A stretch of DNA of 64,000 nt, taken from Guillardia theta CCMP2712. Taxonomy: Eukaryota; Protista; Cryptophyta. The stretch is from assembly GCF_000315625.1 (NCBI RefSeq), contig NW_005434658.1, positions 401,139 to 465,138 on the forward strand, given 5' to 3'. The notes beneath the pieces were generated by a model. That model was not told where the DNA came from. It worked only from the letters and a program-made list of their open reading frames with translations, and did not search any database. This document shows positions 13,776 to 51,800 of the stretch, one piece after another; within the stretch, counting starts at the first letter, position 1, and each line of letters starts with the position of its first letter. Made by a program: the position numbers and the translations under genes.

Positions 13776-15467
13776 TCAGACCTGCGGGCAAGGGGTGCCG
13801 CCCTCGTTCGATCGCCTCTCTTCCATCTCCAGTCCTCGGAGGAGAAGGTTCAGCCTCTCAAAGGTCCCCATCACCAGCTCGTACTGCCCTCCAGCTGATC
13901 GCGCGGCGTCAGGGTGGTACAACTCGCTCTGGATGCTTTGCAAGGCAGAGGAGACGTGCTTCCAGCCTGCAAACGTCCTCTCAGCCGCCTGCTCTGCCTC
14001 GTGCTCCGCGGCAGCACTATCGTCAGCTACAAGATGCTCTGCACCATTGACCTCTGCATCCATCTCCCTGAGAAGAGCCTCCATGTACTGCTGAGAGTCG
14101 TCGTCGTCTGCGTGCTCGAACTCGCGCACATCCTCCGAGTCAATGTCATGGATCCCGCTCTCGTGGATCGCCGCCATGATGTCCTCCTCTTCCGCACTCG
14201 GGCCGCTGACTGCCGGCTGCAGTCTCGCTTTCTCCTGGTTGGGGAACCTGATGCCAATCTCTGCCTTCTTCAAGCAGTCCAGGATCACCTGCGGGCTGAT
14301 AGCGTCCCATGCCGCCTTCACGAACTGTGCTGCGTCCAGCAAGTGTGCTGGGTGCCCGAACTTCACACCCGCCACCCCTCGCCGCAAAGTCTTGGCAGCC
14401 GCCTTGAGCTTCTGGACTTGGTTCTGGTCCATGGAATGGAAGCTCAGGACCTCCTTGAGGTAGAGGTACTTGTACTTCTTCTTCAGGGCGGAGATGACGC
14501 CCTGATGGAAGTACTCCCTCTGACCTATCCCACTCGGAGGAAAGACGAGGACCCGGACCCGGTCTCGCTCGACGGGCTTCGAGAATCGTCCTTGTGAGTT
14601 GAAGATGAGGAGCAGGACTGAATGGTTCGTCCGCTGCCTCACTGCCGGCATGAAAACTTCCTCATACCACTTCGAGCACACTTCCTGATCCACCCACGCT
14701 CTTCGTTGTGCCAAATACGGGATGGGCCACTGCCTGTGTTGGATGCAGGCTGGCTCGACGGCCCTTCCCACCATGGCGCACGGGATCTTGTGAGAGCCCG
14801 TGGAGTTGGAGCATGCGATTAGCGTCACTCGGTCCTTGGCCTCCCCAGCGCTACCGCCGTCGTCCTCCTGCATGGCGCGGAAGTACCTTGGGAGGAGGCG
14901 AAAGAAGAGTCCCGTCTCGTCCATGATGTACACGTCTTCGGGGGAGTACCCAGAGACTACCTTGTAGAGCCTCTGGAGGTCTTCTCCCTCCTGCACGTCC
15001 TTCCTCTCCGGCTCCCTCACGGCATCGCGCGAAAGAATGTTCTGTAGGTTCCTCCTTCTCCTGAAGTTCGACAACCACTTCCAAGACGCCCTGAACGTCC
15101 CCGCGGCGCCTTGCTGTGCTGCGATCTCCACGGCCTTAGCCTTCACCTGCGCAGCGGACACCTCGATGCCCTTTCTCTGGCACTCCTGTATCCAGTCGAA
15201 GAGCTTGTCCTCCATGGCAGGGAAGGAAGGGTTCGATGCCCGGAAGGTCTTGGCTCTGGTGGAATCGGGCAGGTTCTGAACGCGGTTCCGGATGGCGTCC
15301 TGCTGCTTCAGCGTCTTGATGATGGACACGTGCGACACGCCATACTCCCGCGCGATGGCCCTCTGGCTCTTCCCAGAGGAGCCCTGCAACTTCTCAATGA
15401 TCTCCATCCTCTCCACGTCATTGAGACGGCTCCTCCTCCTCTCCTTCTCGTTCCCTCGGTCGGACAT
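13776..15467 (-). CDS. Pogo/Tigger transposase-derived protein (CENP-B N-terminal HTH + Tc5 HTH + DDE_1-like domain), catalytic triad degenerate
   Basis: SQRAIAREYGVSHVSIIKTLK, EDKLFDWI, FRASWKWLSNFRRR, VYIMDETGLFF, KDRVTL..CSNSTGSHK, Y.AQRRAWVD. Intact, intronless 563 aa ORF. Confidence 0.88.
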   Translation of the reverse strand: MSDRGNEKERRRSRLNDVERMEIIEKLQGSSGKSQRAIAREYGVSHVSIIKTLKQQDAIRNRVQNLPDSTRAKTFRASNPSFPAMEDKLFDWIQECQRKGIEVSAAQVKAKAVEIAAQQGAAGTFRASWKWLSNFRRRRNLQNILSRDAVREPERKDVQEGEDLQRLYKVVSGYSPEDVYIMDETGLFFRLLPRYFRAMQEDDGGSAGEAKDRVTLIACSNSTGSHKIPCAMVGRAVEPACIQHRQWPIPYLAQRRAWVDQEVCSKWYEEVFMPAVRQRTNHSVLLLIFNSQGRFSKPVERDRVRVLVFPPSGIGQREYFHQGVISALKKKYKYLYLKEVLSFHSMDQNQVQKLKAAAKTLRRGVAGVKFGHPAHLLDAAQFVKAAWDAISPQVILDCLKKAEIGIRFPNQEKARLQPAVSGPSAEEEDIMAAIHESGIHDIDSEDVREFEHADDDDSQQYMEALLREMDAEVNGAEHLVADDSAAAEHEAEQAAERTFAGWKHVSSALQSIQSELYHPDAARSAGGQYELVMGTFERLNLLLRGLEMEERRSNEGGTPCPQV

Positions 15468-15833
15468 CTCTCACACTTCACCCGCCTCCTCCGCCCCCGC
15501 TCGAACCCTCCGCTCCTGCTCTCTGCGACTTGTTCTGAACCACGCCCTCCTCTCCACCTTGCCAGGCAGCCTGCCCCTGCCTTGCTTGTTCTTGACCAAC
15601 CTCTGTTTCCCACGTAGCCTCTAACTTCTTGTCTTCTACTCCCCCCCCTTGATGCTACCTCTCTCCCTCCTCTCCTCTCTCCCTCCTCCTCTCCTCACTC
15701 CACCCCTCCTTCCACCTGCTCCGCTCTGCCCTCGCTCTGCCCCGCCATGATATATTCGCAGCCCTTTTTAGCCCGGCTGCCCCCAACGTTCCCCTACCCT
15801 GGCAGCCTTTCCCTGTGACTGGAGCCGTTGACC

Positions 15834-18800
15834 ATGGCGGAGGGGCGAAGCCTGGACTTCCATGCGACGAGCTCGCTGAATCAGGCGCTCATGGCGAAGC
15901 CCGTCTCCTATGCCAAGGACAACCTTGGGAACAGGGAGGCGCTCGACAAGGCGAAGCACAGGACGGAGGTCGCGGACATGGGTTGGAGGGAGCGGAAGGA
16001 GAAGGAGCAGGCGGAGTCAGAGGTGAGGTACCTCACGAAGACAGCATGGCATATTGGCAGCGGGTACAACTATGGCGTCGGATTCACCGACCAACATGGT
16101 TGGAACTCCATCGGGAGCAACCTTGGCGCCTCGCCTCCTCGGCTGTACGAGTATGCCGGGCTGACAGTGAGGGAGTTCACCAAGACGAGCGGGCCGTTCA
16201 TGCAGGATCAGAGGAAGGATGAAAGGATAGGAGACATGCTGGTGAGCAAGCAGGAGAGGCATGAAACAGCGAAGATGAACACATCGAAGAACATCAAGCT
16301 GATCAACGAGTTCCTAGAGCCCTACGTGGTCGAGTACATGAACCGTGTGAAGTACAAGCTGAAGGAGGACGAAGGAGCGATCGAGGAGCTCTTCATGCAG
16401 CTCAACGATGAGTTCCTGACCAGTATCGACATGGCGAAGATCCAGGGGATCTGGGTGGAGTACCAGGAGCACAGCTCTCTGCGGGAGACCTGGATCGCTG
16501 AGTTCGAGGAGCAGACGGAGCAGTTGGAAATTCAGAGGGGAGCCCTGGTGCAGAACGAGCTCAAGTCCCTGGGCATAATCCTGCTTGACATCGCGCATGA
16601 GCTGCGGGGGCCTATAGAGCGCTACCTGGAGGATGAAGCGTACAAGCAGAACCATGTCATCTTGAACAACAGGAGGGCGTATGCTGATATCATCCAGCGG
16701 CTGAGGGTGCACGAGATCGAGAGGGACAAGAAGGCGAGGAGCAGGTGGGAGCTGCGCAAGGTAGCATGGTACGATACTCTCCATGACCGGGCGGTGGCCA
16801 AGTGCAAGGCGACGCTGGAGAGCAAGAACTACTCGCAGCCCAAGAAGCGCGACACGCTGTACGGGGCCCTCAGGTCCCAGCAGACGATCTTGTTCGAGAG
16901 GCGGCTGAACATGTGGATGGACTTGCAAAGCCTTGTCCCTCCCTCCCTCACCGTCGACAAGGCCAAGACCTGGACCGAGCAGCTGCAGTCGCTGGACGCG
17001 GAGCAGGAGCTGGAGATCAAGCAGCGCTGCGGGGCGATCAGGAAGTTCGAGATCGAGCACTTCGAGGAGAGCAGGAAAGTTATCGAGAGCATGAAGAAGG
17101 AGCTGAAGGGATATGCCGAGATGACGGACGCTGAGATGCCCTCGGAGCAGGAGCTGCAGGAGACCTCGGCGGAGTTCGAGGCGTTGATCACCAAGAGGAA
17201 GGAGGTAAAGGGGCTGCTTTCACCGGGGAGATATGGGAGGAGGAACGACGCTGGTTGCGAGCTCCGGTTCCTCAAGACGAGAGTGTGGTGGAGTGCTTGG
17301 CGGGAGGGGAGGAGAGTGAGGAGATGACGTGCAGCTGCTGACATGTTTGCGGCAGCTGGGATTGGAGGCCGTGCGCCAATGTTCGGAGACTCTTGTGCTA
17401 CAGCTGGAGTACGTGAAGACCCCAGGGCTCGAGCTGGGGAGGTTGATCAGCGTAATTGCAAAGATTTGCGAAGATCAGGATGAGAAGGTGAGGAGGGGGG
17501 GGCAGGGGGGGTAGAGGAGAGGAAGTGCTAGTGGATTGGTGGGGGGGAGGAAGAGGAAAGTGAAAGGGAGGTGGTTCAGGACAGGGAAGAGATTGAGGAG
17601 GGGAGGAGAGGGACGAAATCGGGAGGTGGAGAGGAGGAGGGAGGAGGAGACAGTCGAATGTCTCACAGCCGCTGCGCAGGTGAAGCAGATGAGGGTCGGG
17701 CACACGTCGGAGATGGAGAGGCTGAAGGAGGAGAACGCGAGCTCGGAGATCAAGCTGGAGGACGAGTTCGAGTACTGGATGACGCAGATGCGGCAAGATC
17801 AGAGCGCCGAAAGCCTCAAGGAAAAGCTGCCCCTTGCCCTCGATGCCCTCGACAAGATCAAGGGGTGAGAGCACGAGGGGGAGGGAGGGAGGGAGGGGGG
17901 AGGGAGGGAGGGAGGGAGGGAGGGGGACGGGGAGGGGGAGGGGGAAGGGACTCGACGGGTTGGANNNNNNNNNNNNNNNNNNNNNNNNNNNNNNNNNNNN
18001 NNNNNNNNNNNNNNNNNNNNNNNNNNNNNNNNNNNNNNNNNNNNNNNNNNNNNNNNNNNNNNNNGGGGCTCGACGGGTTGGACCTGCCTTTTGTAACTTG
18101 TGCTGCGTGCTTTGAAATGTTGATAGTCAGAGGGAGTTCCTTGCTGCTCCCCTGATATCCTCCTCAACCCAATTTTGTCTCTTTCCCCCTCCTGTTCTCC
18201 TCCTCGCTTCACTGCCCCTCTATGTTGCTCTGGTCCCCTTCCTCCTCCTCCTCCCCCTCCCCCTCCTCCTCCCTCTCCATCCTCCCCCTCCCCCTCCCCC
18301 CTCCTCCTCCACCTAAAATTCGTCTCCCCGACTCCTTCCTGCTGCGTCACAATCTTTCCCCATCCTCTGCCTCCTTCGCTCGCTAGCTGAATCGACTTTT
18401 TCCTCCTCGACGTCCCTCACGCCTGGTCGTGCAGGGAGTATCGGCGGTACTACGAGGCAGGGATGGAAGAGACGAGAAACTTCGAGGAGAAGATGAGAAG
18501 TCAGCTCGAGGAGATCGACGGGCTGATCTTGACGCGACTGGCCCTGTCCAACGAGGTGGTTGAGAAGGAGGAGGAGAAGGAGGAGGAGAAGGAGGAGGGC
18601 GAAAAGGAGGGAGAAGACGACGAATCCTTCCTCCTCGACGATGACGAGGTACATCCCCTCTCACCTGCTGCGTCAAAACCCTTCTCCCCTCCTCACAGCA
18701 TCTCCTGTCCTTCTTTCCCTCCTCTCCCCCCTTCTGCATCTCCTCCCCTTCTCCTCTCGTCCTTCGTCTCCTGCTGCCCTGCATGTTTCTCCCTCCCCTG

Positions 18801-26348: not shown

Positions 26349-26989
26349 CGTTGAATCTGGTGACTAATGTGTACAATTTTATCGAGGAAAAAAAAAGAAT
26401 TTGAAAGTTGGTGTTGCAATGTCGTCCCGTGGTTCTAATTTCAAATTGATACATATTTTTTCATGAAATAATTGAATTTCCAAATTCTCAACAAGAGGAA
26501 CGATCAGGCTTCTTCTGGGTGGGGTAGGAAGACTAGGGGGTAATAAGAGGTAAAATCAGGGGGTAGGGGTTCATATCTTTGGCCTCTATACGGGTTGCCA
26601 GCAGCGACCGCTGTTGCCTGATTTGATTTGACCACAACAAATTATGACCACGGGTCAAAACATAGTGCCCTTCAACTTGTGTGTCCTCGTACTGATTTTT
26701 AACTTAATTTTGAGTAAAGATTCACAATTGAGTCAAGTTCCCGGCTGGCCCATGATAATTCAACTGAGTAACCTCCTCGACTCTAAAACCCTAACCGTCC
26801 GTCCGAACAGCCTGGGCCTGACTCAAGTTTCACGGTCCGGGCCTCGCACTGATTTTTAACTTAACTTTCAGTTTGCCGCCGCGCTGCCAGCCTGTGCCAT
26901 GGCACTGGCAGTGGCCTGAGTGCCGGCCCGGGTCCCGGGTACGGTCCCGCCGGCAGCCTCGCCTCGAGTCACTGACTCGTGAGTCGGGC

Positions 26990-27140
26990 CGCGGCCAAGG
27001 AGTGGGGGGGCAGCAGCATATGCGAGCACGAGCGGCAGCGATCGCAATGCAAGGACTGCGGGGGCCGCGCAGCAGCATATGCGAGCACGGGCCGGGCCGG
27101 GCAGCGATCGCAATGCAAGGACTGCGCGGCGGAAGAGGGA
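26990..27140 (+). pseudogene. Degenerate 54-nt repeat encoding a CxxCGGSSICEHxRQRSQ Cys/His (zinc-binding-type) motif
   Basis: Copy 1 KEWGGSSICEHERQRSQ intact apart from C>W. Copy 2 is interrupted by GC-rich insertions. A partial third copy (CKDC) follows. No start codon; flanked by GC islands. Confidence 0.65.
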
Positions 27141-27864
27141 GCAGAAGCGAGGAGCCGAGCACACTACACCAGCACAGACTACTACAACCACACGCTTGCC
27201 TTGCTGTCGTCAGGGCCTTATTCTAGCTTCCAGAAGAGAGTAAGCCGTGCTCGCCGGTCACCGGAAAGTCTCCGACTGGCGACGATCTGATTGCCTCAGC
27301 CTACGCCGGGGGAACGGTTGGGAGCCTCGGAGGTGGGGGAGGTGGGGGGATTGGTCCGAGTCTGAGATCATGCGGGCGCGGGTGACTCAGGGAGTGTGAC
27401 TGGAGGTGGGGAGCCCGGCTGGGAAACTTCAAGGCTTGCAAGCTTGCATGCTGCCAGGATGCGATATGGCTGCTCCTCTCCAAGATGACCAGGTCGACGA
27501 GGAAACGTCTTGTGCACCGAACCGCCCGTCGGCTCCTCAAGAGTCCGTAGAGCATCAACTACCTATGAAGGACGAGTCGCTGAGCTAACTGGCACAGCGG
27601 CAAGCCTACGGGCCGGGCCCCGGCGGCCGCGCAGTGGCCGCCGCCGGTGGCACCGCCGGGGCACTCAGGCGGATCCGATGATCGCCGCCGGGATCGGATG
27701 CCAGTAACTGAGTGGCACGGGTTCCGAAACTTCATTCCGAGTTCGGGTGACGCCGGGCCGCCCCCGCGAGGCTGCTCGGGCGGCCGCGGACTTGGAGTTC
27801 TGGAGCCTCTATTTGGAGTTTAACGATATGATACAGTATGTTGCAACATGGTGTTATCGCCAAG

Positions 27865-27917
27865 GCAACATCGTCTGTCAGTAGACATCGCTGGTGCCTA
27901 CTGACAGACGATGTTGC
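27865..27917. repeat. Perfect 20-bp inverted repeat with 13-nt loop overlapping a stop codon
   Basis: gcaacatcgtctgtcagtag (27865-27884) / ctactgacagacgatgttgc (27898-27917). Confidence 0.95.
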
Positions 27918-30805
27918 GGAACGTTATGTACTGCTTGTGAAAGTACTTCTTGACTTCAAAGATATCTTCCGTTGTCACCTGTGTGTCTGTTCAGAGCTCT
28001 TCTCTCTCTGCCTTCCTGCCTCCCTGCCTCCCTGCCTCCATAGCCACCCTATTATTTCGTTCTTTCCCTTTCGATTTCCGACTCTGTCACACCTCCCTGA
28101 AGTTTCAATGACCCCGTCGTATCCCTCCCTCCTCTCACTTTCACTCGTCCTGTCGACTTGCATGGAGCTCTTACCTGGATCTCACAAATGTGCTTTATCA
28201 ACCCTGGAGTCTCTTTCCATCGACAAACAGGAACGACCTCCAAACCTCTCGGGAAGTCCTTCAATTTCCATCCCATCTGAGACAAACTTCACACCCTTGA
28301 ATTGAGCCCACACTGATCGCACCTCTACGTTGACGCAGAGATCGCGATAGCCTGCGCTCTCGCGCGCGTCATACTTTGGATCAAACCTGTCGAGGACTGT
28401 CAATTGCGCGCTCAGCCTCTGGACTCCTCACCGATTCTTGATGCTTGTGATGTTGAAAAGTTTCTTCGTGTCCCCCTGCCACCAGATATCACGTACAGCA
28501 ATCGAACCCGACATTGCAGTATCTCAACAAGCTCCCTTACCTCTTCTTCCTCCTCCTTCTCGTCAACAACTCCATTTCGACCAATCGTGCTGCAGTCGAG
28601 CAGTCTTTGCAGCCACGAGTTGAGCTCCGACATGCTCTTCACTATCACGGTAGAGCGCACAAGGTCTGTGAGGTAGGAAGGGTCCCTGCCGTAGGAACGA
28701 ACTACCTTCTGCATTGCTCTCGAGATCTTTTTTAGTCTACCCTCGTGAACGAATCCAACAACATTCCAGCTCTTGATGAACATCTGGAAGAAGGGGCTGA
28801 TCAGCTGTGCCTTCTCGTACATGCTCTCGATGTCCTGCGAGGACTGCAAAATTTTCCCTTTGCTCGAGAAGCGCTGTCTCTGCACCTTGTGCCGATGCCA
28901 TGAGGGGCGAAACTTCTTTGCTGCCTTGAAAATCATCTGGAGCCTGGCTGACACTCGGCGCGACTTGGATGCCAGATCATCGATCATCTCCCTCTCTGCT
29001 TTCAATGCGCTTCTCCAGACCTCCTCTATCTTTGTGGTCTCAAGAGCCATGCCTCCATGAGCTTGCTTCAGCATCTTCTGATACCGTATCAGGATAAGAG
29101 GAACTAGAGTAATGATTATCCCCCCGTAAACGCGAAAGAAGGTCTTGGCCCAAACGCTCCAGCTGCTGTTCAAAGACATTGTGTAGAAGATGTATCCACC
29201 TTGAGCCAGGTACACAATGACCCAGATGTACCTCTGTACAAGATGGCCCGACAAGAACACACATAACACAGAGAAGGATGCGGTAAGACTGAATCTACCA
29301 TTGCACGCGCTGCCGATTCCTCCACCTGCATACTTGCATTGCACGTAGTCGCTGATCCCTGACGTCAAGTACAGCATTGCTCCCAGAAAAACTATTAAGG
29401 AGATGAGCCTCTTAGCTAGCAGAGGACTTTCCCTTAGCGCCAAGTACATGCTCAGAGGCACCCCAACGGCCCACATGACGTTGATGGCAGGATCAAGGAC
29501 TCGGGTGATTCGTAGCGTCTTAGGGATGTAAGGCTTTCTCTCGTCAGGCTGGTACACCCACCTTGCGTCCGAGAACAGGTGGGCGAGCTGAAAGTATGCA
29601 AAGGAGGCATAGAGGCTACTTAGACCGAGCATGGCCAACTGAGTCGGGAGCTTCAGTATGCCGGTCTCGATGCAGTTGGTGGTCATCATGGCAAGGATCC
29701 CATCGGCCTCTATGTCCTTGTACCGGTAGAGCTGCTCCTTCAGGGGCCTCAGCCGCTTGTCGTGGGAGAGGGTGACGTGTGCTTCCCCTAGTTTCTGTGT
29801 GATGCTTTCATCCAGACACATTGCCTCCATCGCTGTTGCCGCACGCAGCAAGCAGCAGCCTGCCCTCGCATTACAGCGCCGACATCTGCTTGGGGTCGCC
29901 TCGGAGGGACATTGTTGATGGCTGAATGCCGACAGGCTCTCGAGTATCGAGCCCTTGAAACCATGCTTCTCAAGGATGTCAGAAACTGCGCCTCCGCAGC
30001 AGGTGTGCTTCAAGTACCTTTCCACTACCCTCTTCACATACTTTCCAAACGTCACTGGCAGTCGATCCTTGACCATGCATGCACACGCGAAGGCATCTTC
30101 ATCCCTTGACTTGTGCTCCACAAGACAGGGTTCTTCAAACACACAGCATGACGTATAAAAGATTGTCATCCCCCCAATGCCATCCCCTCCATACAGGATC
30201 GCTCTGACCGTATCCTTGATCGACCACCGCTGAAGTCTTTCAAAGATCTCCGGGTACTCGCCTGCTCCTATGAGGCTCAACTCCCTTGCTGCTGACTTGC
30301 ATGTCTTCAGCGAGGCTCCGAGGCTCAATCCCTCCATCGCCTGCCTTGATAGAAGCCATCTACTCCCCTCTGACACGACCACAGGCACTACTGCCCTTAT
30401 CTGCGAAAGCTTGCGATCATCCCTGTAGATCAGGTACAAGGCAACAAGCAGCTCTGCGAGGAACTTGTCCTGCCTGTCCTGGTCCTCCTCAGGTCGGACC
30501 CTTGCAAGCTCTTCCAAAGTCTGTCGCCCGCCCAGGTGCTGAAATATCGGAACAAATACGAGAGATTTCGCAAGCTCACGGGCCCAGCCAGACTCCTTGC
30601 CAACCCATGCATCTCGCGCGTTTTTGCTGCAATCTCTGCAGGCCAGGCAATCCCAGGAAGCCATCAGCTCCGCTTGAAACAGCTTGATGTACCGGTAGGC
30701 TGCTGGCTCCAAATCATGTAGAGTATCCCTGAGCTCAAACGTGCACCCGCTCCCCCAGTAGACGATGCGGAGATGGTTTGAGCAAGGAGTTTCGTCATTC
30801 CCCAT
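27898..30805 (-). CDS. TIR-like domain + ~6 TM helices + RelA/SpoT-synthetase-like nucleotidyltransferase domain
   Basis: N-term: LAKSLVFVPIF...QDKFLAELLVAL...IRAVVPVVV. Six hydrophobic segments. C-term after splicing: GRLKKISRAMQKVVRSY, LTDLVRSTVI, IKNRF, AGYRDLCVN, HICEIQV, H..Y..FRN. Stop at 27898. Confidence 0.7.
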
Positions 30806-31169
30806 GGCTCGGACCACTGCAATTTAGCAACGACCGAACTTTCCGAGATGCGATTCAGAGTACCCTTGCTTGGGCGTGAGGGGATTAAATATCATAGATC
30901 GAGATTTTGAGGAGGAGAGAGAGTGCTACACTGCACTTGTTTCTCTTCCTCTGCTCTCCGCTCTCCGCTCTTGATCTCGAGCTCTGCTTCGCTGCGTTTC
31001 TACCCCCACATGTCGTCAGTTCGCCATCTTCGCCTCAACAAATCCGAGCAAAACAACGTCCATGTCCAAGAACTCTACAAAAAAATTCAATTTGAGTATG
31101 TAAAATAGAACCAATCGATGAAATTTCAATGACAAAGATTGAATTTGAAATAAGTTCAAAGGCTTGTTA

Positions 31170-32743: not shown

Positions 32744-35700
32744 GTATCCCCTTCATCCCTCCTCCCTCTCCCCCTTCCAACATTTGCGGGCTCCTCTCCA
32801 CACCTGTATCGTCACTTACCCTCCCCTTCCTGCTTTTCCCCTCTCCTCTCCAATTCTCCCTTCTTCGCCCCTGGCATCCTCTTCGTCCCCCTCCACCCCT
32901 TCGTTACCTTTCCAACGCGGATGTCCAAACGTCTCACGTCCTCCAGATCGGCTGCTGCCGCCGCCGCTGCTGGTGGCTGCGCTTGCTGCTGCGGCTTCGA
33001 GTGCATCAGCATCGACGTGAGGGAGGAAGGGGCATACCTTGCTGTCAGCAGCAGGAGCAGAGGAAGAGGAGGAGGAGGAGGCCCAGTTGTCGCGGAGGGT
33101 GACGACCCTGTTGAACACCAGCGAGCCGGGCTTGCTGTCCTCTGTGTCCGTGACAAAGTAGCCCATCCGTTCGAACTGGAAGTGCTTTCCTGCCTCACAG
33201 TCCTTCACGGAAGGCTCGACGAAGGCTCCCTTCATGATCTTAAGCGAGTCAGGGTTCAAGTCCTTGAGAAAGTCTCCATCCTCGTGCTCCTTCCCTGGAG
33301 CAGCAGCGTTGAACAGCCGATCGTACACCCTCACCTGAATCCAGTCAGCTCCCGTCTCCTCCTCCCCGCCCCTTTCCTTCCTTGTTCCTCTCCTTATCTT
33401 CTGCTCCTACTTATCCTCTTCCCCGCACCTCCTGCTCCTGCTCTTTGCCTGCTCCTCCCCTTCCCCCCCGCTCTCCTCGCTCTCATCCTCCTCCTCTTTG
33501 CCTCCTGCTCGTACCTCACAGGGGATCGCAGACTCCTGTGAGACCCAGTGTATGATCCCCTTGACCTTCTTCATCCCCTCAGGCGTAGCTCCAGCTCTCG
33601 TGTCCGGGTTGTACGTGCAGCGCAGTTCCACCACCTTCCCCTCCTTGTCCTTGACGACCTCGTTGCAAGTGACCACGTAGGCAAACCTGAGCCTCACATC
33701 GCCCCCGGGGGTCAGCCTGAAGTAGCCCTTGGGGGGATTTTCGTTGAAGTCCTCCCTCTCGATGTACAGGGAGCCACTGAAGGGGAGCTGCCGGATCCCG
33801 AGCTCGGGCCTCTTGGGGTGCGAGTCGACCTCGAACATCTCTACCTTCCCCTCCGGCCAGTTGGTGATGGTCAGCTTGACAGGATCCAGCACGCCGAACA
33901 CCCGAGGGGCATCGTCCTCCAGCACCTCCCGAGCACAGTCCTCGAGCACGGACATGTCGATGTTGTTGTCGGCCTTGCTGATTCCGATCCTCTCGCAGAA
34001 GAGCCGGAGGGCCTCGGGAGTGTATCCCCTCCTCCTGATGCCGGAGATCGTCGGCATCCTGGGGTCCGACCAGCCATGCACGTGCTTTCCTTCCACCAGC
34101 TGGATCAGCTTCCTCTTGGAGAGCACGGTGTACTGGAGGTTGAGGCGCGAGAACTCGGTCTGCTGGGGGGGAACGCCCTTCGACAGGCACTCGATCAGTC
34201 CGGAGTCCCTCAGCTCGTCGAGCACCCAATCGTACAGGGGGCGATGGTCCTCGAACTCTAGAGTGCAGAGCGAGTGCGTGATGCCCTCGACAGCATCGGA
34301 AATGCAGTGGGCGAAGTCGTACATGGGGTAGATACACCACTTATCCCCAGTCATCACGTGCGTGGCCTTCCTGATGCGGTACAGCGTCGGGTCCCGCATG
34401 TTGATGTTCGGGCTGGCCATGTCGATCTTGGCACGGACCACGTACTTGCCGTCCTCGAACTCCCCGTTCCTCATCCTTGTGAACAGGTCCAGGCTCTCTT
34501 CTACAGGCCTGTTCCTGAACGGAGACTCTTTCCCAGGCTCAGTCAGCGTCCCACGGTACTGCCGGATCTCTTCTGCCGTCAGCTCCTCCACGTACGCCTT
34601 CCCCTTCTTGATCAGATGAATTGCCGCCTCATAGAAGGTCTCGAAGTAGTCCGAGGCATACCTCGTGTTGCCATCCCACGGATCCGCACTGTCCACAGAC
34701 CCGCCGACCAGCCATCGCACGTCCTTGAGGATGGACCGCACGTACTCCTCGTCCTCCTTCACTGGGTTGGTATCGTCGAACCTCATGTTCGTCCGCCCCC
34801 CGTACTCCTTCGCCACGCCGAAGTTGAGGCAGATTGACTTGGCATGGCCGATGTGGAGGTAGCCGTTGGGCTCAGGGGGGAAGCGCGTGCGCACGAGGCT
34901 GTGCTTCTTCTCTGCGAGGTCCCTCTCTATCATGTTGGAGATGAAGTGCTTTCGGAAGCTCCCAGCAGACGCCTCCTCCGCAGGAGCTGGCTTCGGAGCC
35001 GCCACGGTGCTCTCGGGGGCCTTAGCGGCGGGGGCCTTCTCCTCCTTGTGTCCCGTGACGGGTGGAGCAGGAGTCGTGCTCTTGACGGGAGAGGGAGTGG
35101 AGGAGCTGGAGTAAAATCCCCTCCTCCACACTCCTCGATCATCGTAGCACCCTCGCTGCCAAACGACGTCGTCCTGCTGCTGGCGAGGTAAGGAACGACC
35201 GCAAGAGCAGAGGGGGACATAACACCTGCATCCTGAGAGCGCTGAGCCGGATTGATCTCGTTGAAACCAGCGGCATTCTGAGCGAGCAGGTGACGAACAA
35301 GGTTGAAGGGGGGGAGGGGGGGGGGCAAGAGGAGGAGGAGGAGGAGTGTTCTGTTTCACCTGAAGATGTTGCCCTCCGAGCTTCTTTCCGTCCTCTTCAG
35401 AGGGATCTGACAGGCACGAGAGTCAGCGATCGCATGATTCATGCACTGCAGGACGATGATGTCGGGAGTGAGATATTACATTCGATCTCAAACCGTTGTA
35501 GGCGTTGAACGCAAAGGCAAAACCAGTTGAACGCACCCTGAAACTCCATACGTGAGCGGCCAAAGGAACAAGATCGTACTGTTGTGATGATCAAGGAATA
35601 TGGTGCGAGGAGGGTAGAGGTGAAGGTTCAGCATAACAAGAACATGAAGATGTTCAAAGGCAGGTCAAGAAGATCCTCGACACACAAACACTTCATCTGA

Positions 35701-38913: not shown

Positions 38914-41261
38914 ATGGTCTGCACACCTAGTCTCTGAACTTGAATGTTTCAGACCTTGCCGAAGCAAGCAGCTCAGGCGAGAACTCCTGTCGGTAAAAAG
39001 TCGGTGCCTTCGTCTGGGAAGAAGCGAGCAAGGAAGGCGGACAGCAGCAGCAGCAGCAGCAGCTCTTCAGGGAGCGAGGACGAGTCACCTGTAATACCAG
39101 ACTCTCGTGCTCTTGTCTTGACAGTCACGTGACGGGGGGGCAGGCCCAGGAGAGCTCGAGCTCGAGCGATTCCGAGGTAGAGACGAAGAAGACGATGCCG
39201 GTCAAGAAGCGAGGCCGCGCGGCCGCTGCTCCTGTGGCACGCGACAGCGAGTCTTCCTCGGAGTTCGAAGACGAGTATGACGAGGAGTTCTTCAAGAACG
39301 AGGACGACAGGAAGTGGATGATGAGCTTGAACGAGTTGGAGCGTGAGGCCATCATCTCAGAGCGTCGAGATCAGCAGACCCTTGCTAAGGAAGCCTGGAT
39401 GGTACGGCACAAGAAGAAGAAAGAGGGCTTGAACCAAGCTCCTGCTGCCAGTGCTTCCAACTCCCAGGGCATACGTGAGCCCCACGTTCCATGCTCGTCA
39501 CAGGACTGAGCAAGTTGCAGGGTCGCGAAGGGACGTGAAGCCAGTCGATGACAAGAAGCAGCAGAAGAAGGCAGCTCTTGAGGACATGGAGGTTCGCAAG
39601 ACTCAAGACCAGTCGAAGAAGGCCAGGCTCAAGGTTGTGGAAGATGATGGCGACGACGAGGAGAGGTCTCCTCGAGGTCATGAGCGAGAAAAGCAGAGGG
39701 AAGAACCACACTTCGAGAAGACTGTGAAGCCAAGGTGTCGCTCTGTGCTTGTTGCCCATAGTACGAGGTTGACTTGATTGGAAGGCATCGTCAGATTCAA
39801 GAAGAATTCCGTGATTATCCTCGAGTTGCCTACGACAAGGTCGAGGCAGCCCGTGTGTCCCGCGACAGGCTCCTTGAGTACGTCAAGTGAGTTCGTGAAA
39901 ATCTGTGTTGTGATGGCCACTGAATGATTTTGACAGTGAACCATTCTTCGGTGAATTTGTTCAGGGACTGTTTGTTCGCGTCAATCTGGGAGAAAACAAT
40001 CTGGGAGAGACACGATACATCCTCGGCCAAATCATAGGGTTGAAGGAAGTGGACAAGAAGTACGAAGGTGTTTGCTCCAAGACGAAGCGAAAAATTCCTT
40101 TGCAGAAGGTCCTTTGTGTGACGCATGCTGGTCAACAGAAGAAGTTTCAGATGACGCTTGTCTCCAACAAACCCTTCCTGAACTCCGAGGTAGACAAATG
40201 GTGCAAAGACGTCTCGATCGAGCGCGAGAAACTCCCGACTGACGACGAGCTGGACGAGCTGAAGGCCAAGTTGGAGAAGCGATGGAAGGAGGAGTTCAGA
40301 TATGATCAGGGTGTTGTCGAGCAGATCCTGCAAGAGAAACGGAAGAAAGGAAGTACGTCAGGCAACGTTGCTCTGAATAAGCTCTGCCTTCACGATGAGA
40401 TGGAGGAGGCTTGGGAGGATTACAAGCAGCTCACCGACGCGGATCCAGATAGCAAGGACAAGGCTTATCAACGTTGGGAAGATCTTAGAGAGAAGGTGAA
40501 CGAGCTAGAAAGGAAGGAGAAGGAGCAGCAAGAATCTGCGCAGCAAGGATACAAGAGTGTGAACAAGATCAACCAGAGGAACCACCTTGCGAACCGAACA
40601 GTTTCAAAGAAGCTAGAGTCATCGAGGAACATCACATGTACAAGACACTACCAACAGACCGTTTACTTTCAGTTTGGAGGGAAGGGCGAGGACGCTGACG
40701 CCCGCAAGATCGCTGAGGACGATCGCTTCAAGGGAGAGTCGCTCAACACCACAGAACCAGCAAAGAACGGGCTGAATGTTGAGGCTGAGATCGACGACGA
40801 TGACGAGGAGGAGCGTCTTCTGCTGAGCAAGAAGTCTTCTGCTTCGTCCTCGGATGCCTCCACCTCTTCCCACTCGCTGATCAAGCAAGCGCATGCTGCT
40901 GAGCAGCTCGACCTTGAGGTCCGCCTGCTGCAGGACTGCTTGCCGCCCCTGAATTTCTCGCAGATCGACATGAGCGCTCCGAAGAAGCTAGATGAGGCCC
41001 CTATGCTCTTTCGCTCAGTCAATCCTCTAAAGCCTGTGGACAACATCAAGGTCTCCCCTCGTTCCCTGGCCTGCGTCTTCGCATCCGTCCCTTCCCTGCT
41101 CTTGGCATCCGTCTCTTTCCCTCCCTGCTCTTCTCTTCCGCTCCTTCCCCTCTTTTGTTCATTTGAACCTTTTCTGTTGACTCGAATCTCTATAGGTCAG
41201 CTCCGGGAGTGGGAAGAAACTCTCTCTGGAAGACTACAAGCGGCGTCTGCAGAAGAACTAG
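38914..41261 (+). CDS. RTF1: RTF1 (PAF1 complex, Plus3 domain); multi-exon
   Basis: DRKWMMSLNELEREAIISER, RVSRDRL, PFFGEFVQGLFVRVNLG...Y.LGQI, F.MTLVSNKPF..SE, INQRN, C-terminal LSLEDYKRR. Start approximate. Confidence 0.88.
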
Positions 41262-41456
41262 AAGCTGGAGGGAGGGATGGAGGAATGGGAGGAAGCCGCG
41301 CCTGACGATACCTGGAGGAGTCGGGCGCACTACATGATGTCACTTTGAACCCTTTTTTCTTCGTTGTCTGACATTTGGTTATTACGATCAAAAATGAAAA
41401 AAATCATCTTTTTCCGATTGACTTGCTATGTACGTTGCTTCTTACAATTACATGTC

Positions 41457-45857: not shown

Positions 45858-48800
45858 TGGACGAGATGGTTGCCGGCATGAAGCTCTCGGCTCCTCGCAG
45901 AGGCTGCCAGACCTGCAGGCAAAGTCTCAGCAAGAGCGTTGCTGCTCTCCAGCTCCGCCACTCACCGTGTCGACGAGCTCCCGCATGTCCATCCTCCTCC
46001 TCATCAGGCCCTGCACGCTCTTCTTCCCCTCCCTGCCACCTCAGTCACAGGACGCCCCCAGCAGGACGCCAGCAGCAGCTCACCCGTCCGTGACTGACTT
46101 CATGTCTCCTCCCACGTACAGGAAGCCGCCGGAATAGAGCATGCTGTGCACGTTTCCTTCCACCGCCGCCGCGAGCTCCTTCCAGCCCATGAAGACGCCT
46201 CCCTGCATGGGAGGATGAGCTGGGGAACATGAGAGGAGGAGGGAGGCCGCTACCTGGATGACAGTCTTGGCCATGGACAGGATCTTGAGGTTGCCGGCTC
46301 CTGTATGCCGCTGTCAGAGGGAGGAGAGAGGAGGAGGGGGAGGACTTACGCTGGAAGTCTCCTCCGATGTAGATGTTGTTGCCGTCGGTGACGACTGTAA
46401 AGTAAACCTCACATGAGCGACTGCTGCCGACCTCCCTTGCACTTGCCTGCCCGGACAGTCTGGTCGAACTCTCCCAAGCTCAGCCACTTCCCAGCCGTAA
46501 AGTCCCAGCGCACGACATTGGAGAGGATCGTATCCCCTGCTCAGGCGCCGTTCAGTCAGCTCGCACTCACTCTCTCCCCAGCTGGAGTCTACCTGAACGG
46601 TAGATCGTCCCGACAACCACGAGGCCGACGTCAGCGGAGTAGGACATGTCGTTAACCTCTGCTGCCTGCAGCCCTCCTCCTATCGCCGACCACCCCTGAG
46701 CCCCCGTCAGCATCCAGCATCCATCTATCCCCCTCTCTGACGTTGCGCCTCCCTTCCTCCGCCTTTCCTCCTCCTCCTCCACCTCCTCCTCGTCCTTCTC
46801 TTTCCCCCCCTCCTCTTCCTCCTCCTTCTCGTCCTTCTCGTTCTCGTTCTCCTGCTCCTCCTCCTCACCAGTCCATCAAACACGGCAATGTTCTGCATTG
46901 TCGTATCTCCGATGCTGTTGAATCTCCCGCCCACGTAGAGGTTGTCTCCAACCGTCACGCTGCCAGCATTTCTAAATTCTCCTCCTCCCTTCCTACCCAG
47001 CATTACCTGCAGAAAACAACACCATTCACCGCTCTCCCTCCTATGAGGCTCCAGGAAGTTCCGTTCCAGAACCCGAGCCCTCCACTCTGCAAGCCGTCGC
47101 TGACTGACGTCTGCTCCTGTTGTCAACGCTGGATTTTGACAGGGGAGAGGAGAAGCGAAGAGAGGAAAGGAGGGGAGGGGAGGGGAGAGGACCAAGGAAG
47201 GACGAAGAGGAGGGAAGATGGTAGGAGAGGTTAAAGAAAGGAAGGGAGAGGGAAGGGAGAGGGAAGGGGAAGGGAGGAGAAACCTGCTGGCGGAATATGC
47301 GGGAGAACGCTCCTCCGGCAGCGATGCCGTTCTTGTACTTGCTGAGGGAGTAGACCGGGCCGTTCAGCCCTCCTCCCACTGGGAAGTGACGGACCCCATC
47401 CCACATCACCTGCAGCTGGGGTCAGGGATCCTGCCTCCTTGCAGCCACGTCACAGACCAGGTACGAAGTCTGTCTAGACTCCGAACGGAAGGTACCTCCG
47501 TACATCACCTTGCCCTGGAAGAACTCCAGAGCTCTGCCAGGTGGAGGTCAGGTGGGCAGGAGAGAGAGAGAGTGCGAGGCGGGGAGGGATGGAAGGGGGG
47601 GGGGAAGGGAGGGGGGGCAGTACCTGACGACGCCCCTCTGGCCCAGCAGGTTGCTGGCAGAGACTTCACGCTCGGCTGCTGGACAGAAGGTGTGGGAGGA
47701 GTTGCAAGAGGCAGCCGGGGGCGAGAGGCCCGGGCCGAGGGCGAGGAGGGTCATGGTGTGGTTGGCCGACGCCTCCAGGAAGCTTCCTCCAAACATGAGG
47801 TCGGCATGCACCACCCCCTCCGAATAGGTGAAGCTCCTGCCTTCCCCGCGGTAGATGACTACTCCCAGGGGGTTGGAGGAGGAGAAGGAGGGGAGGGAGA
47901 CGGTCACGGGCATCCTCCCCGGCATGGACCCGTTGGGTGCGATGCAGGTGATCATGCTGCTGGACGCGATGCGAAGGTCCAGGCACAGCTCCCTTCCCAC
48001 GTAGACCAGCGCCTGCCGGTCCTCGAAGTTGACGTAGGGGGCCGCGTCAGCAGGGAGGGAGTCAAGGAAGTTGTTGCCGATAATGGTCATGGTCCAGCCC
48101 TGGGAGCTCCTCCCTACGCAGGGGAAGATGGAAGTGACGAGGGGCATACCGAAGACTTTCAGCCGCATGTCCACCGCAGCGCTCTCGTTCCTCCCTCCCC
48201 TCTGCGTTCCGCCGGAGTCCGCGAGCACGATGCTCATGTTGAGGGTGCCTTGGTGGTTTTGCGAGAGGTTCAGATGGAGGGAGCCTGTGTCACCCGATGA
48301 GATGGTGAAGAGGTTGAGGCGTGAAAGGGGGGGAGGAGAAGAGAAGGGGAAGAAGAGCGACTGAGAGGAGGCAAGCAAGCAGGAGGGACGAGGAGGAGGA
48401 GGAGCGGGAGGGAACAGGCAGGCATCAAACCTTCGGGAGTGATGTGCGGCAACGATCCAAGGAGAAGAGGAGTGTAGTGCAGGTTGGCGATGACGAAGGT
48501 CAAGTTCTGCCACAACTCATTCGCTGGCCCCACCTGACAACAGAGAACAGTCAACGGGCGAGCATGATGACAGGAAGGAGGGGAGAGAACAGGAGGAGGG
48601 GAGGACAGCGGCTGACACGCCTCTCAGACAGAGGACATGCTGCGCTGGTTGGGCTGAAAGACCCACCGAAATGTTGGTGAAAACTTCATCGACGACGAGG
48701 TCCTGCCGGTCGGACAGGACGGCGACCAGGGGAGAGACGGCGGCGCTGGGAGGGTTGTTGACAGGGAGGACGATGATATCAAGAGAGTGGGAGGCCTCGG

Positions 48801-51800
48801 CAGACTTGCTGGCATCGAATCGGTTCTGCGATCGCAGCAGGAATGTCACGGAGGAGACGCCGTACTGGTAGGGAGCCAGGACGAAGGTCAGACTGCCTGA
48901 CAGCCCCTGGAGAGCGATGACAGGGCATCCAGTGCAGGATGAGGATGTCGGGGACGAGTCAGAGAGGAAAAGCTCCTTCCGTGTGACGCTGGTCACTACC
49001 ACAGTGAGGACGTTGGCCGTCTGCTGATCGAGCCCCCCGTCGGCAAACTGGAAGAAGCCCGTGTAGTTGTGTACCAGAGCCGCCGCCACCTCGTCCACGA
49101 TCAGGTAACTCTCAGCTAGGTCGGCAAGGGGAGGGAGGACGACGGGCGGGACTGAGACGTTCTGCTCGATGACGACGGGCGTTGTGATCGCAGGAGGCTG
49201 CACGACTACCTCCGGCTTCGCCACCACCTGCCCGATCTGAACCCGGAACGAGAACGTCGCCGTGTCCAGCCCCCCCCGTGCCCTCCCCCCGTTGTCAACG
49301 ATATTGAAGGTCAGGACGAAGGATCCGAAGCTGCCTGGGTCGAAGTCCACGTGAAGGAACCCGTTGTCGTAGTAGAAGGACTTGACCACCCCCCTGTCCT
49401 CCTCGCACACCTCCACAGCCACCGTCGTGTTCCCCACCCCCATCATCTCCGTCCGGCAGCGCGTCACGTTCGCCATCTCCATCCTGTACCAGCACGTGAA
49501 GCCCTCCTTCTCCTTGGTAAGGTTGCAGAAGGGTCCGGCCTGATACCCGCCGGGCCCAAGGGAGTTGGATGACGGATGAGTGAGGCCGGACGAGAGGACC
49601 TTGTTGAAGCAGGTATTCAAGCTCCCCAGGCACATGTTGGGTACTGAGCATGCTTGCGGGATATCGTCAGGATACCAACTCAGGCAGGAGAGGACGTGCT
49701 GGTCGAACGGCTGACCCTGGAGGATTGAGAAGGAGCTCTGCTGGAGTATGTAGGAGGGGGGGTCGTTAACAGGGAGAGAGCGGAGGATGAAGGATGCGGG
49801 ATGAGACTCCCGGAACTCAGCTGGGATGTTGTCGTCGTCGATGACTAGCTGGATCTGGACCGAGCACTCGCCGTACACGTTGGGGCTCCACTGGAAGGAA
49901 GTGACCCCGTAGTACCTCCCGTCCGGTCGCTTGAGAGTGATGAAGGTGGGCAGCTGTGCGAAGACGTCGGTTGCCGGCCTCGTCACCCCGACGATGCTGC
50001 ACGTGATGTTCTGCATCAGCTGCCACTGCGCGACCTTGGGGCTCTGCATCCACCGGACGCCGCTGGCGAAGTCGACGACCTTGAGACCGGCGTCCTCGTT
50101 AACCACCACGTCCATGAGCTGGAACATCGGCTTAAAGTTCGCTGACAGCAGCGTCAGCTGCGCCGTCTGCGTGATGTTGGAGGAGTCTGAACTGATCGCA
50201 AGCGTCTGCTCCCCTCCCCAGCTGGACTTCACATTAAAGGACAGCTTGCCGTCCTTGTCGATAGCTGGGGGGCTGGTGGCGATGGCGTTCTGATCACCCA
50301 GGAAGGAGGCAGAAAAGGAGGAGGAGCGACAGATGGGAGGCACGAGCTCGTGGACAACGGAGAGCGGAGGGATGGTCCCACAGGGCAGGTTGAAGCGAGG
50401 AGGCCGTGAGCGGACAAGGAGGGAGCGGAAGCAGGTCGTTACCAGCCGCTCCTTGGTGTAGTTGACCAAGTCCATGACGGTTGACTGCAGGAGCCTCCTC
50501 GCAGTTGGGGAGCTGCAATTCTCCAGCGTCTCGTTACAAGGAAGAGACGAGTTTGACGTGCTGTTGAGCTGACTCGAGCTGGAGTTGCTGGTGCTGTTGG
50601 AATCCACTGTGCCGTTAAAGCTCGTGGCGTTTGTGACGTTGGTCCCGTTGGTGCTGTTGAGAACGATCCTCCACGTCTCCATCTGCAGCTGATCGGTCAC
50701 GATCTCTTCGTAGCATTGCGTGTCTGACAGCTCCATCCGCACGGCCCCTGCCAGCCCGACGATCCCCTCACTGACTGACGCGTTGAGCCGCGACAGCTGC
50801 AGCGGCTGCTCGCTCCAAGTCTGCACCCAAGTGAGGTTTGACACGACGCGGCTGGAGGAGTCGAGGACGTCCTGAACTTTGACGTGCACGAGGGTCCGGG
50901 CGGTCGGGCTGACCGCAAACACGTTCCCTTGGTTGTCAATGTTGACAACTGAGACCCCTTGGAGGCCCTTGAGTGTGGAGAAGTCAAATTCGTACATGAC
51001 GAGCCCTGTGGTTAGGCTGGACAGGCACATCAGGCTGAGAGCTGGCGAGGGCTGGACGATCGTGGCGGACAGCAGCAGGCCAGCTGGCACCTTGAGGTGC
51101 GCTTCGTGGATTCTCCTCTCCGAGGACGGGACATCCGATCCGAACAGTCCCCTGTACTGGTCGTCGGTGATTGACATGAGCGCAGAGAACTTCGAAGTCG
51201 CCTTGTCCCATTGGAGGACGTGTACGAACGAGCTGCCCTCGTCCTCGCTGTAGGCTGGCGGGACGTGCGCGAGGGCCAGGTAGACGTCGCCGCGCTGGTG
51301 GAAGCAGACAAGGCTCGACGAGGCCTCTGGCAGCGCCTGAAACTCCACGAGCTGATCCTGCTCCCACCTGTATAGGGGCGACGACTGAGCCGACGACGCC
51401 GACTGGACACTTGCGAACCCAACGAGTAGAAGTGACCCCGTCGGGCCCTGGACCGTACAGGAAGTGATGTCCGTTACCCCTGTAACTGGCAACCTGTGCA
51501 CCAACCGGAACAGCCCGGCCTTCTCCCTTAGGAAGGGGTTCCAGTCTTGTTGGAACCACTCCCACACCGACGAAAGCCCGTCAGTCCGCTGGTTGTCGTC
51601 CTGGTAGGAGTTGCCGTACACTATGAGGTGCCTGAGGGTGCCCGAGGGGGCAGAGACGTTCAAATGAAGAACGGCAGACGCGCTGGACGTTGCGATGGGC
51701 TGGAAGAAGTCGAAGCCTAACATGTCCACCGTCTTGCCGCTCTCCAGACTCCTCCTCCCGTCGTTGTTCCACCGGAACACCGCAGACAACCACTCGCTGC

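Follow-up and report, generated by a model that had tools for sequence, protein, structure and literature searches.

The stretch of Guillardia theta CCMP2712 DNA analysed here (the window; 64,000 nucleotides of contig NW_005434658.1) carries on its minus strand the gene GUITHDRAFT_135605 (XP_005836897), identified by protein match. Here, we show using transcript alignment, family profiles, fold searches and structure models that this gene is real and expressed, that it is spliced as in a public transcript, and that its 851-residue product ends in a domain of predicted RelA/SpoT fold whose nearest characterised kin, by sequence, are the bacterial synthetases of the RelV/VpEAS group. The original prediction, made from the letters of the window, described a TIR domain, six transmembrane (TM) helices and a RelA/SpoT-like synthetase in one polypeptide; this order holds, but a SAM-like segment between the TIR domain and the membrane helices had been overlooked.

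An open reading frame (ORF) of 801 aa is present at 28412-30817 on the minus strand, and removal of four GT-AG introns had been proposed to extend it into the C-terminal domain. The public transcript contig L053 (JGI 3300017164, 2857 nt) contains all five exons exactly and contiguously and removes precisely these four introns, so that the exons with GYRD and EIQ are joined to the long ORF and the intron-retaining 801-aa frame is ruled out as the gene product. The frame is kept throughout, for a total of 851 codons plus stop (Table 1). Likewise, the public protein P0001 (MMETSP / UniRef A0A7S4P367) contains the translation of every exon in order; this transcript-derived protein was used for all full-length analyses, while the spliced gene model was searched exon by exon. 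The RefSeq model is longer (863 aa), with 12 additional residues at intron 4 that are absent from the transcript. All predicted motifs were recovered, namely SLVFVPIF at residue 81, DKFLAELLVAL at 113, VVPVVV at 139, GRLK at 689, TDLVR at 713, KNRF at 768, GYRD at 782 and CEIQV at 822, and the alphaC glutamate codon is that of E118. Contamination with bacterial DNA is ruled out by the introns, the transcript and the paralogues. Separately, positions 27865-27917 (minus strand) can form a hairpin that spans the stop codon in the mRNA (20 bp perfect, 23 with G-U pairs; -43.2 kcal/mol, z -7); it is the sole one in a scan of the window, is absent at 14 paralogue and homologue stops, and is probably a local inverted duplication.

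Table 1. Features of GUITHDRAFT_135605 in window coordinates (UTR, untranslated region)
Feature	Position	Strand	Basis or remark
Transcribed unit	27818..31026	-	Transcript contig L053 aligned to window; 5' UTR 31026-30806, 3' UTR 27897-27818 (3' end near 27818); 851-aa product
Exon 1, residues 1-755	28541..30805	-	Frame, protein P0001, transcript L053
Intron 1, 65 nt, GT-AG	28476..28540	-	Frame and transcript L053
Exon 2, ends in KN of KNRF	28432..28475	-	Frame and transcript L053
Intron 2, 45 nt, GT-AG, contains in-frame stop	28387..28431	-	Frame and transcript L053
Exon 3, carries GYRD	28323..28386	-	Frame and transcript L053
Intron 3, 46 nt, GT-AG	28277..28322	-	Frame and transcript L053
Exon 4, beta-hairpin insert and HICEIQ	28175..28276	-	Frame and transcript L053
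Intron 4, 196 nt, GT-AG	27979..28174	-	Frame and transcript L053
Exon 5, H..Y..FR and stop	27898..27978	-	Frame and transcript L053
TIR domain, residues 14-250	30056..30766	-	VIA and profile; betaC-alphaE (72-204) conserved, betaA-BB loop diverged
E118, column of L1IYH1 catalytic Glu (E1141)	30452..30454	-	Profile alignment
SAM-like segment, about residues 263-300, eroded in this copy	29906..30019	-	Family profile, Pfam in relatives, hhalign
Six-helix membrane domain, residues 386-575	29081..29650	-	AlphaFold (AF2) pLDDT about 90; Cys490/Cys501 in loop 3, sequon N546 in loop 5; conservation
Helical stalk prolonging TM6, residues 576-631	28913..29080	-	AF2 model
RelA/SpoT-fold synthetase, residues 657-851	27901..28837	-	Exons 1-5; Foldseek, VIA, PDB profile matches, RelV-like matches, invariance

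The AF2 model of residues 362-851 (predicted local distance difference test score, pLDDT, 87) comprises six membrane helices, a stalk and an alpha/beta domain. For the last of these the best 50 Foldseek matches are all RSH enzymes, and VIA places RelP first (Z 12.0, root-mean-square deviation 2.8 over 149), followed by RelQ (11.6), Tas1 (9.7), SaEAS (9.4) and CapRel (8.9); in sequence the domain aligns to RelP across its whole length (E 2.3e-5). The RelA/SpoT-type fold and catalytic residues that had been foreseen are borne out by these models, with the motifs following in order: K692, R696, K700, R703 and Y705; D714-x-x-R717-x-T719; K768-N-R-F; G782-Y-R-D-L-C787; E823-I-Q825; and H839-x-x-Y842-x-x-F-R846. 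The basic syn1 residues, the syn2 aspartate and the syn4 ExQ of RSH synthetases are thus present, and D714, R717, K768, E823 and Q825 correspond by motif to D121, R124, K154, E182 and Q184 of SaEAS (PMC12691689). Seven of the residues (K692, R696, K700, R703, Y705, D714 and R717) are invariant in 16 of the 16 alignment rows that reach them. Across 32 family synthetase domains K, R, K, R, Y, D, R, N, R, G, R and E do not vary; no or almost no variation is seen at the basic syn1 residues, D714, R717, KNR, GYR, E823 and the final Y..R, and the donor- and metal-binding residues are retained among paralogues despite about 25% overall identity. The synthetase is the best-conserved part of the protein (52-71%, versus 23-58% for the TIR core), with the higher value in every pair compared.

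The canonical (p)ppGpp signature of RSH enzymes is nevertheless missing. In syn2, R717-S-T719 replaces AVR or GVR and gives the RxT signature of the Apk1/Apk2 and EAS type. In syn3, for which SxH and GxN types have been described (PMC12226406), the sequence reads DxC. The original prediction had written this motif as GYRD...N; the motif itself stands, but its asparagine, N789, is not the syn3 Asn of Apk and RelV, whose place is taken by C787. The domain further has an acidic insert and a long beta-hairpin insert preceding EIQ. Pfam searches per exon and on P0001 gave nothing significant, nor did NCBIfam, and Pfam RelA_SpoT (PF04607) matched 6 of the 32 relatives weakly (best E 0.0017).

To which branch of the synthetases does this domain belong? 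Tas1 is the best sequence match among solved structures, but along its first half only (32.6 bits; RelP 27.5); such a match suggests (p)ppApp as the product, and its half length weakens the suggestion. With the family profile, two Photobacterium proteins score 58 and 66 bits along the entire domain, and all 11 matches in 401 proteobacterial genomes are RelV-like proteins of 257-282 aa (54-75 bits), most of them with a signal-peptide-like start and the motifs VKNRF, GYRDLN and EVQLH. Tas1 was rejected as nearest kin, because the RelV group reaches 58-75 bits with all motifs, versus about 33 bits for Tas1. A V. cholerae RelV segment given in the PMC12691689 supplement aligns colinearly with the Photobacterium protein, at about 58% identity over 135 residues (counted by hand). 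The RelV/EAS motif set TDLxRxT, KNRF, GYRDL, ExQ and H..Y is present in the G. theta synthetase; the syn3 Asn (GYRDLN in RelV, N169 in SaEAS, N370 in Apk1) is the missing residue, and some RelV-like proteins carry Lys at this position. RelV and VpEAS (Vibrio; cluster B of PMC12691689) are Sec-exported, as is SaEAS; RelV and VpEAS produce (p)ppGpp only and are toxic in the cytoplasm (PMC12691689), and SaEAS produces both alarmones. With its RxT and DxC motifs, the kinship of the G. theta domain does not by itself fix the product: judged from sequence, (p)ppGpp is possible, another or a mixed product equally so, and (p)ppApp is unlikely.

Two loci surfaced beside this comparison. Photobacterium sp. 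DA100 carries two tandem RelV-like genes (L055:1654-3486) that are unannotated in the record. In Bordetella phage PHB04 (L056:326-4336), a portal gene is followed by genes for a 493-aa RelA_SpoT protein with GYRDL, a 69-aa ORF and an HD hydrolase; by sequence, this is an Apk2-like toxin-immunity layout with an enzyme of RelV-type motifs.

At the N-terminus, a TIR fold had been predicted, and VIA agrees: the best ten matches to the AlphaFold model of residues 1-350 (pLDDT 75, falling to 39-64 over residues 1-70) are all TIR domains, with SARM1 (Z 8.2) tied with plant TIRs and RPP1 at 7.8. A Z of 8 is middling taken alone, but the list is uniform and consistent with the profiles. A profile built from distant TIRs only aligns the G. 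theta Roc-COR TIR protein L1IYH1 along its full length (89 bits); of P0001 it aligns residues 72-204 (53 bits, E 1.3e-15) and sets E118 in the catalytic column. The paralogue TIR profile matched 55 proteins among 1.84 billion, several of which carry a Pfam TIR_2 match on the same stretch (up to E 1.7e-12). Foldseek found no match to the TIR model with E < 0.001, a question that the wider VIA search settled; the ESM Atlas feature search gave scores of 0.76 only, and a PDB sequence search with narrow TIR and SAM-region profiles and with P0137 found nothing. The gene of L1IYH1 (L108) lies at C63:189353 of the G. theta genome, and L109, a close paralogue that shares its catalytic motif, at C33:44214.

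The SAM-like segment that follows is recognised in relatives, which give weak Pfam SAM matches; the family profile matches the SAM domains of EphA2/SHIP2 (E 2.8e-4), and hhalign aligns the P0001 segment to the SAM-bearing relative P0113 at 90.8%. In P0001 itself Pfam finds no match there, roughly the first two helices are recognisable, and pLDDT is below 50 at residues 302-327. Simple hydropathy makes only four or five membrane helices clear, whereas the AlphaFold model has the six that had been predicted, and TM6 and the stalk form one continuous helix in it. Since the number of helices is even, the model places the TIR domain and the synthetase on the same membrane face, as had been proposed. 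Both ends would be cytosolic, because no leader is visible, loop 2 and the stretch that follows TM6 are rich in basic residues, and Cys490/Cys501 and the N546 sequon lie on the opposite face. The protein had also been called a receptor, which we consider no more than a putative role: none of its outer loops exceeds about 22 residues, and this copy has no ectodomain. With loops this short, direct binding of a large ligand is doubtful; sensing inside the membrane or via a partner is more likely. The fold search with the TM block gave generic helical-bundle matches only (Z at most 8.6), which we do not trust.

In the G. theta genome as searched (87.1 Mb, 669 contigs, with the present gene on C16), exon 1 has 12 long matches; with copies that are split or partial the number reaches about 14, at 27-42% identity, and the paralogues share the exon pattern in their 3' part. 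A synthetase profile gives 160 exon-level matches, to be read as a lower bound and not as a copy number. Orthologues occur in Hanusia phi, and Proteomonas, Baffinella, Hemiselmis and Cryptomonas have the synthetase domain, so that the paralogue survey suggested with the original prediction finds both same-architecture copies and relatives in other cryptophytes. Six more distant proteins have the full order TIR-SAM-TM-synthetase; one is G. theta GUITHDRAFT_113953, and the rest derive from contigs of transcriptomes or metagenomes. A full DNVLLE motif is found in the whole-architecture relatives P0107, P0113, P0114, P0125, P0126 and P0129. Two loci (L101, L102) encode a SAM-like segment, TM helices and synthetase without a TIR match. 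Atlas clusters with a similar domain include ciliate and foraminiferan members (score 0.94), which we treat as a lead only.

Several family loci merit separate mention. On C67, C5 and C206 (L099, L100 and L106), frames of 1061-1498 aa carry two synthetase domains around or between TM segments, with KNR/GYRD motifs in both domains of L100 and L106, a layout that recalls the membrane adenylyl cyclases. Those enzymes consist of a six-TM block, a helical stalk and a cytosolic nucleotide-messenger enzyme of unrelated catalytic fold. GUITHDRAFT_135605 shares this arrangement, and the two-enzyme frames of its family share the tandem form; no membrane adenylyl cyclase is found among the TM-block fold matches listed. 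The transcript-derived proteins P0004 and P0008 (from the paralogue on C524) and P0002 (Hanusia) diverge at intron 1 and lack KNRF, GYRD and EIQ, while P0009 is the fully spliced C524 form; judged by sequence, intron retention or incomplete splicing would here give an enzyme-dead isoform. Inverted pairs or tandem triples, some near-identical, lie at C4:1071681-1079217, C117:82721-89255, C37:146439-157864 and C49:430157 and 456337, and a frame break or stops interrupt the copy on C284 and the plus-strand copy on C117.

How does the protein compare with known systems? It should not be assigned to RelV, to Apk, to plastid RSH or to SARM1, as each comparison fails on a defining feature. RelV and VpEAS share K..RA..K and all later motifs in order and are the best bacterial matches of the family profile; RelV, however, consists of one 259-aa domain that carries a Sec signal, whereas the G. 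theta domain ends an 851-aa six-TM protein, is eukaryotic and intron-split, and differs in its inserts and in its syn3 cysteine. The (p)ppApp toxins Tas1/Apk1 and Apk2 share the fold (25% identity to Tas1), syn1 and the RxT-type syn2, and the family also matches the phage gene that stands after a portal gene and before a small ORF and an HD gene, but GxN, a PAAR or MuF domain and an adjacent immunity gene are all absent in the G. theta case, and the match to Tas1 is limited to the N-terminal half. RelP/RelQ and the long and plastid RSH enzymes give the best structural scores (Z 11-12) and share the catalytic Asp and ExQ, yet the G. theta protein lacks SxH, HD, TGS and ACT. An origin from plastid RSH was rejected: the two ordinary HD+SYNTH genes of G. 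theta lie elsewhere and show no profile-level relation to this family. The protein itself has no Pfam match to HD, TGS or ACT and starts with a TIR domain without hydrophobic leader, so the distinction from plastid RSH proteins drawn earlier is upheld. The protist Roc-COR-type TIR NAD+-cleaving enzymes (NADases; L1IYH1 and S. rosetta, bioRxiv 10.64898/2026.04.20.719644) share the TIR type by profile and the Glu of the catalytic column, but in P0001 their betaA and BB-loop motifs are unrecognisable and the TIR is N-terminal on a membrane protein. In SARM1/TIR-1 a TIR domain adjoins a SAM domain, which recalls the TIR domain and SAM-like segment of this protein; the order ARM-SAM-SAM-TIR is nonetheless absent, the order here being TIR-SAM-6TM-SYNTH with one eroded SAM, no ARM repeats and a second enzyme.

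We propose, with middling confidence, that GUITHDRAFT_135605 encodes a RelV/EAS-branch pyrophosphokinase that is anchored in the membrane and normally kept in check, in which the TIR and SAM-like modules would act as an assembly switch. Both ends would face the cytosol. The trigger would be some change within or at the membrane, or else clustering brought about by the TIR and SAM-like modules; TM6 and the continuous stalk would relay it to the synthetase, which would move pyrophosphate from ATP onto a nucleotide 3'-OH. The output may be a signal, or a drain of purine nucleotides that arrests or kills the cell, with defence or stress the most plausible setting. The TIR of this copy would be chiefly an assembly switch, and any NAD+ cleavage weak or secondary. 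A tethered, regulated form makes sense because RelV-type enzymes are toxic in the cytoplasm, and the existence of family members without a TIR match or with two synthetase domains is in line with the proposal. A defence role is suggested by the domain company and by the lineage-specific expansion with tandem and inverted copies; the gene neighbourhood neither supports nor contradicts it.

Several observations weigh against this proposal. Loop 1 is basic as well, with five K/R, and points to the opposite topology; the cytosolic orientation is read from charges, the Cys pair and the lack of a visible signal peptide. At the acceptor site, where SxH or GxN enzymes have His or Asn, stands a cysteine, and no PF04607 match reaches the gathering score in P0001. 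The catalytic Glu column is kept in 43 of 45 distant TIR matches, and E118 in the four most similar sequences, which leaves NADase activity possible; E118 is kept in Hanusia and in the C524 paralogue. No ligand, target or cytosolic hydrolase was found, and an exon-limited search of the genome found no stand-alone HD hydrolase.

Could the protein be a receptor of two enzymes, whose activation turns on a TIR NADase (making cyclic ADP-ribose, cADPR, or draining NAD+) together with the alarmone synthetase? The original prediction had spoken of two nucleotide second-messenger enzymes, and for this copy we regard that as rather unlikely. E118 stands in the column of E1141, through which L1IYH1 makes cADPR and depletes NAD+ (bioRxiv 10.64898/2026.04.20.719644). 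P0001 fails to align with two motifs of the active TIR type, FxSYR (betaA) and fLD..cL..G..W (betaB/BB loop), which include the betaB Asp and the BB-loop pocket residues; its model is of low confidence in this region. Only 6 of 20 G. theta TIR matches of this type keep the Glu, the other 14 having lost it, and among 15 close copies it remains only in GUITHDRAFT_135605 and the C524 paralogue; most same-architecture paralogues have lost it while keeping all synthetase residues. Moreover, 34% of the TIR-core positions are invariant in this small clade, so a kept Glu is modest evidence, and some Glu-bearing TIRs are inactive (bioRxiv 10.64898/2026.04.20.719644). Going by sequence, we consider NADase activity of this TIR possible but doubtful (about one chance in three). 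A receptor with two active enzymes is more likely to be true of the whole-architecture relatives that keep DNVLLE than of GUITHDRAFT_135605.

The altered syn3 motif, neither SxH nor GxN (PMC12226406), would also suit an acceptor other than a free purine nucleotide, either the 3'-CCA of tRNA, as for CapRel/FaRel2, or another small molecule, so that the outcome would be a translation block or a new messenger. The long hairpin ahead of EIQ and the presence of CapRel among the fold matches point the same way. We know of no established (p)ppGpp target in the eukaryotic cytosol, which also favours such an acceptor. RelV, the closest sequence kin, is however a nucleotide-acceptor enzyme, and CapRel scores under RelP and RelQ, which makes this explanation improbable. 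Slightly less probable again is a synthetase that is catalytically silent or binds nucleotides only, with the protein serving as scaffold or sensor: the lack of a Pfam match at threshold, the syn3 change and the missing stand-alone HD hydrolase that would remove a product are consistent with it, but the invariance of the donor- and metal-binding residues in divergent paralogues argues for catalysis. A reversed topology with the enzyme acting outside the cell or in a lumen, as in the Sec-exported RelV/VpEAS and SaEAS and as the charges of loop 1 would allow, is very improbable, as no signal peptide is visible, the TIR and SAM-like modules would, with an even number of helices, be outside too, loop 2 and the post-TM6 segment are basic, and the conserved Cys pair and the sequon lie on the opposite face.

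The other genes of the window show no visible link to the TIR-synthetase gene. On the minus strand lie a class I tRNA synthetase with HIGH motif (33407-35359; Gln/Glu type, by eye), a pogo-like DDE transposase (13776-15467) and a NUDIX protein (1973-2986), and on the plus strand a DUF4455 protein (15828-17327) and a Plus-3 protein (40040-41305). Two long minus-strand frames (48517-51960, 1147 aa; 55654-63759, 2701 aa) match no Pfam family or give a weak LamG-like match only, and directly downstream of the gene a short plus-strand frame (26979-27290) has repeated Cys-rich units of the CEH..QRSQCKDC type.

Finally, what would this family add to the alarmone synthetases of eukaryotes? A census of RSH proteins lists only plastid RSH, Mesh1 and unplaced divRel in eukaryotes; alarmone synthesis is established for plastid RSH only, plus a few unplaced divRel, while cytosolic Mesh1 hydrolases are widespread (PMC3153485). 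The survey of Apk1 homologues is bacterial, and the supplements examined name no alga as tested. No description of the fusion, or of this synthetase family in cryptophytes, was found in the literature searched, which omits most subscription papers, in line with the earlier statement that no characterised protein of this architecture was known; the parts are known, and the fusion is apparently undescribed.

In conclusion, there are hints that a eukaryote has an alarm-nucleotide system, so far undescribed, that is controlled at a membrane and lies outside its plastid. An unlikely extension is an alarmone pathway in the cytosol of cryptophytes, and probably other protists, that is controlled by receptors and built from a RelV-like bacterial enzyme; some of the receptors (this one included) would also make a TIR-derived NAD messenger, so that a single polypeptide would yield two immune nucleotides. 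The expectation of (p)ppApp for these proteins is revised, as their closest characterised kin make (p)ppGpp. If the proposal is true, a large, expressed family of membrane-bound RelV-like synthetases with TIR and SAM modules would be the missing cytosolic source of alarmones in a protist, and the question of eukaryotic alarmone signalling outside plastids becomes testable with a single domain.

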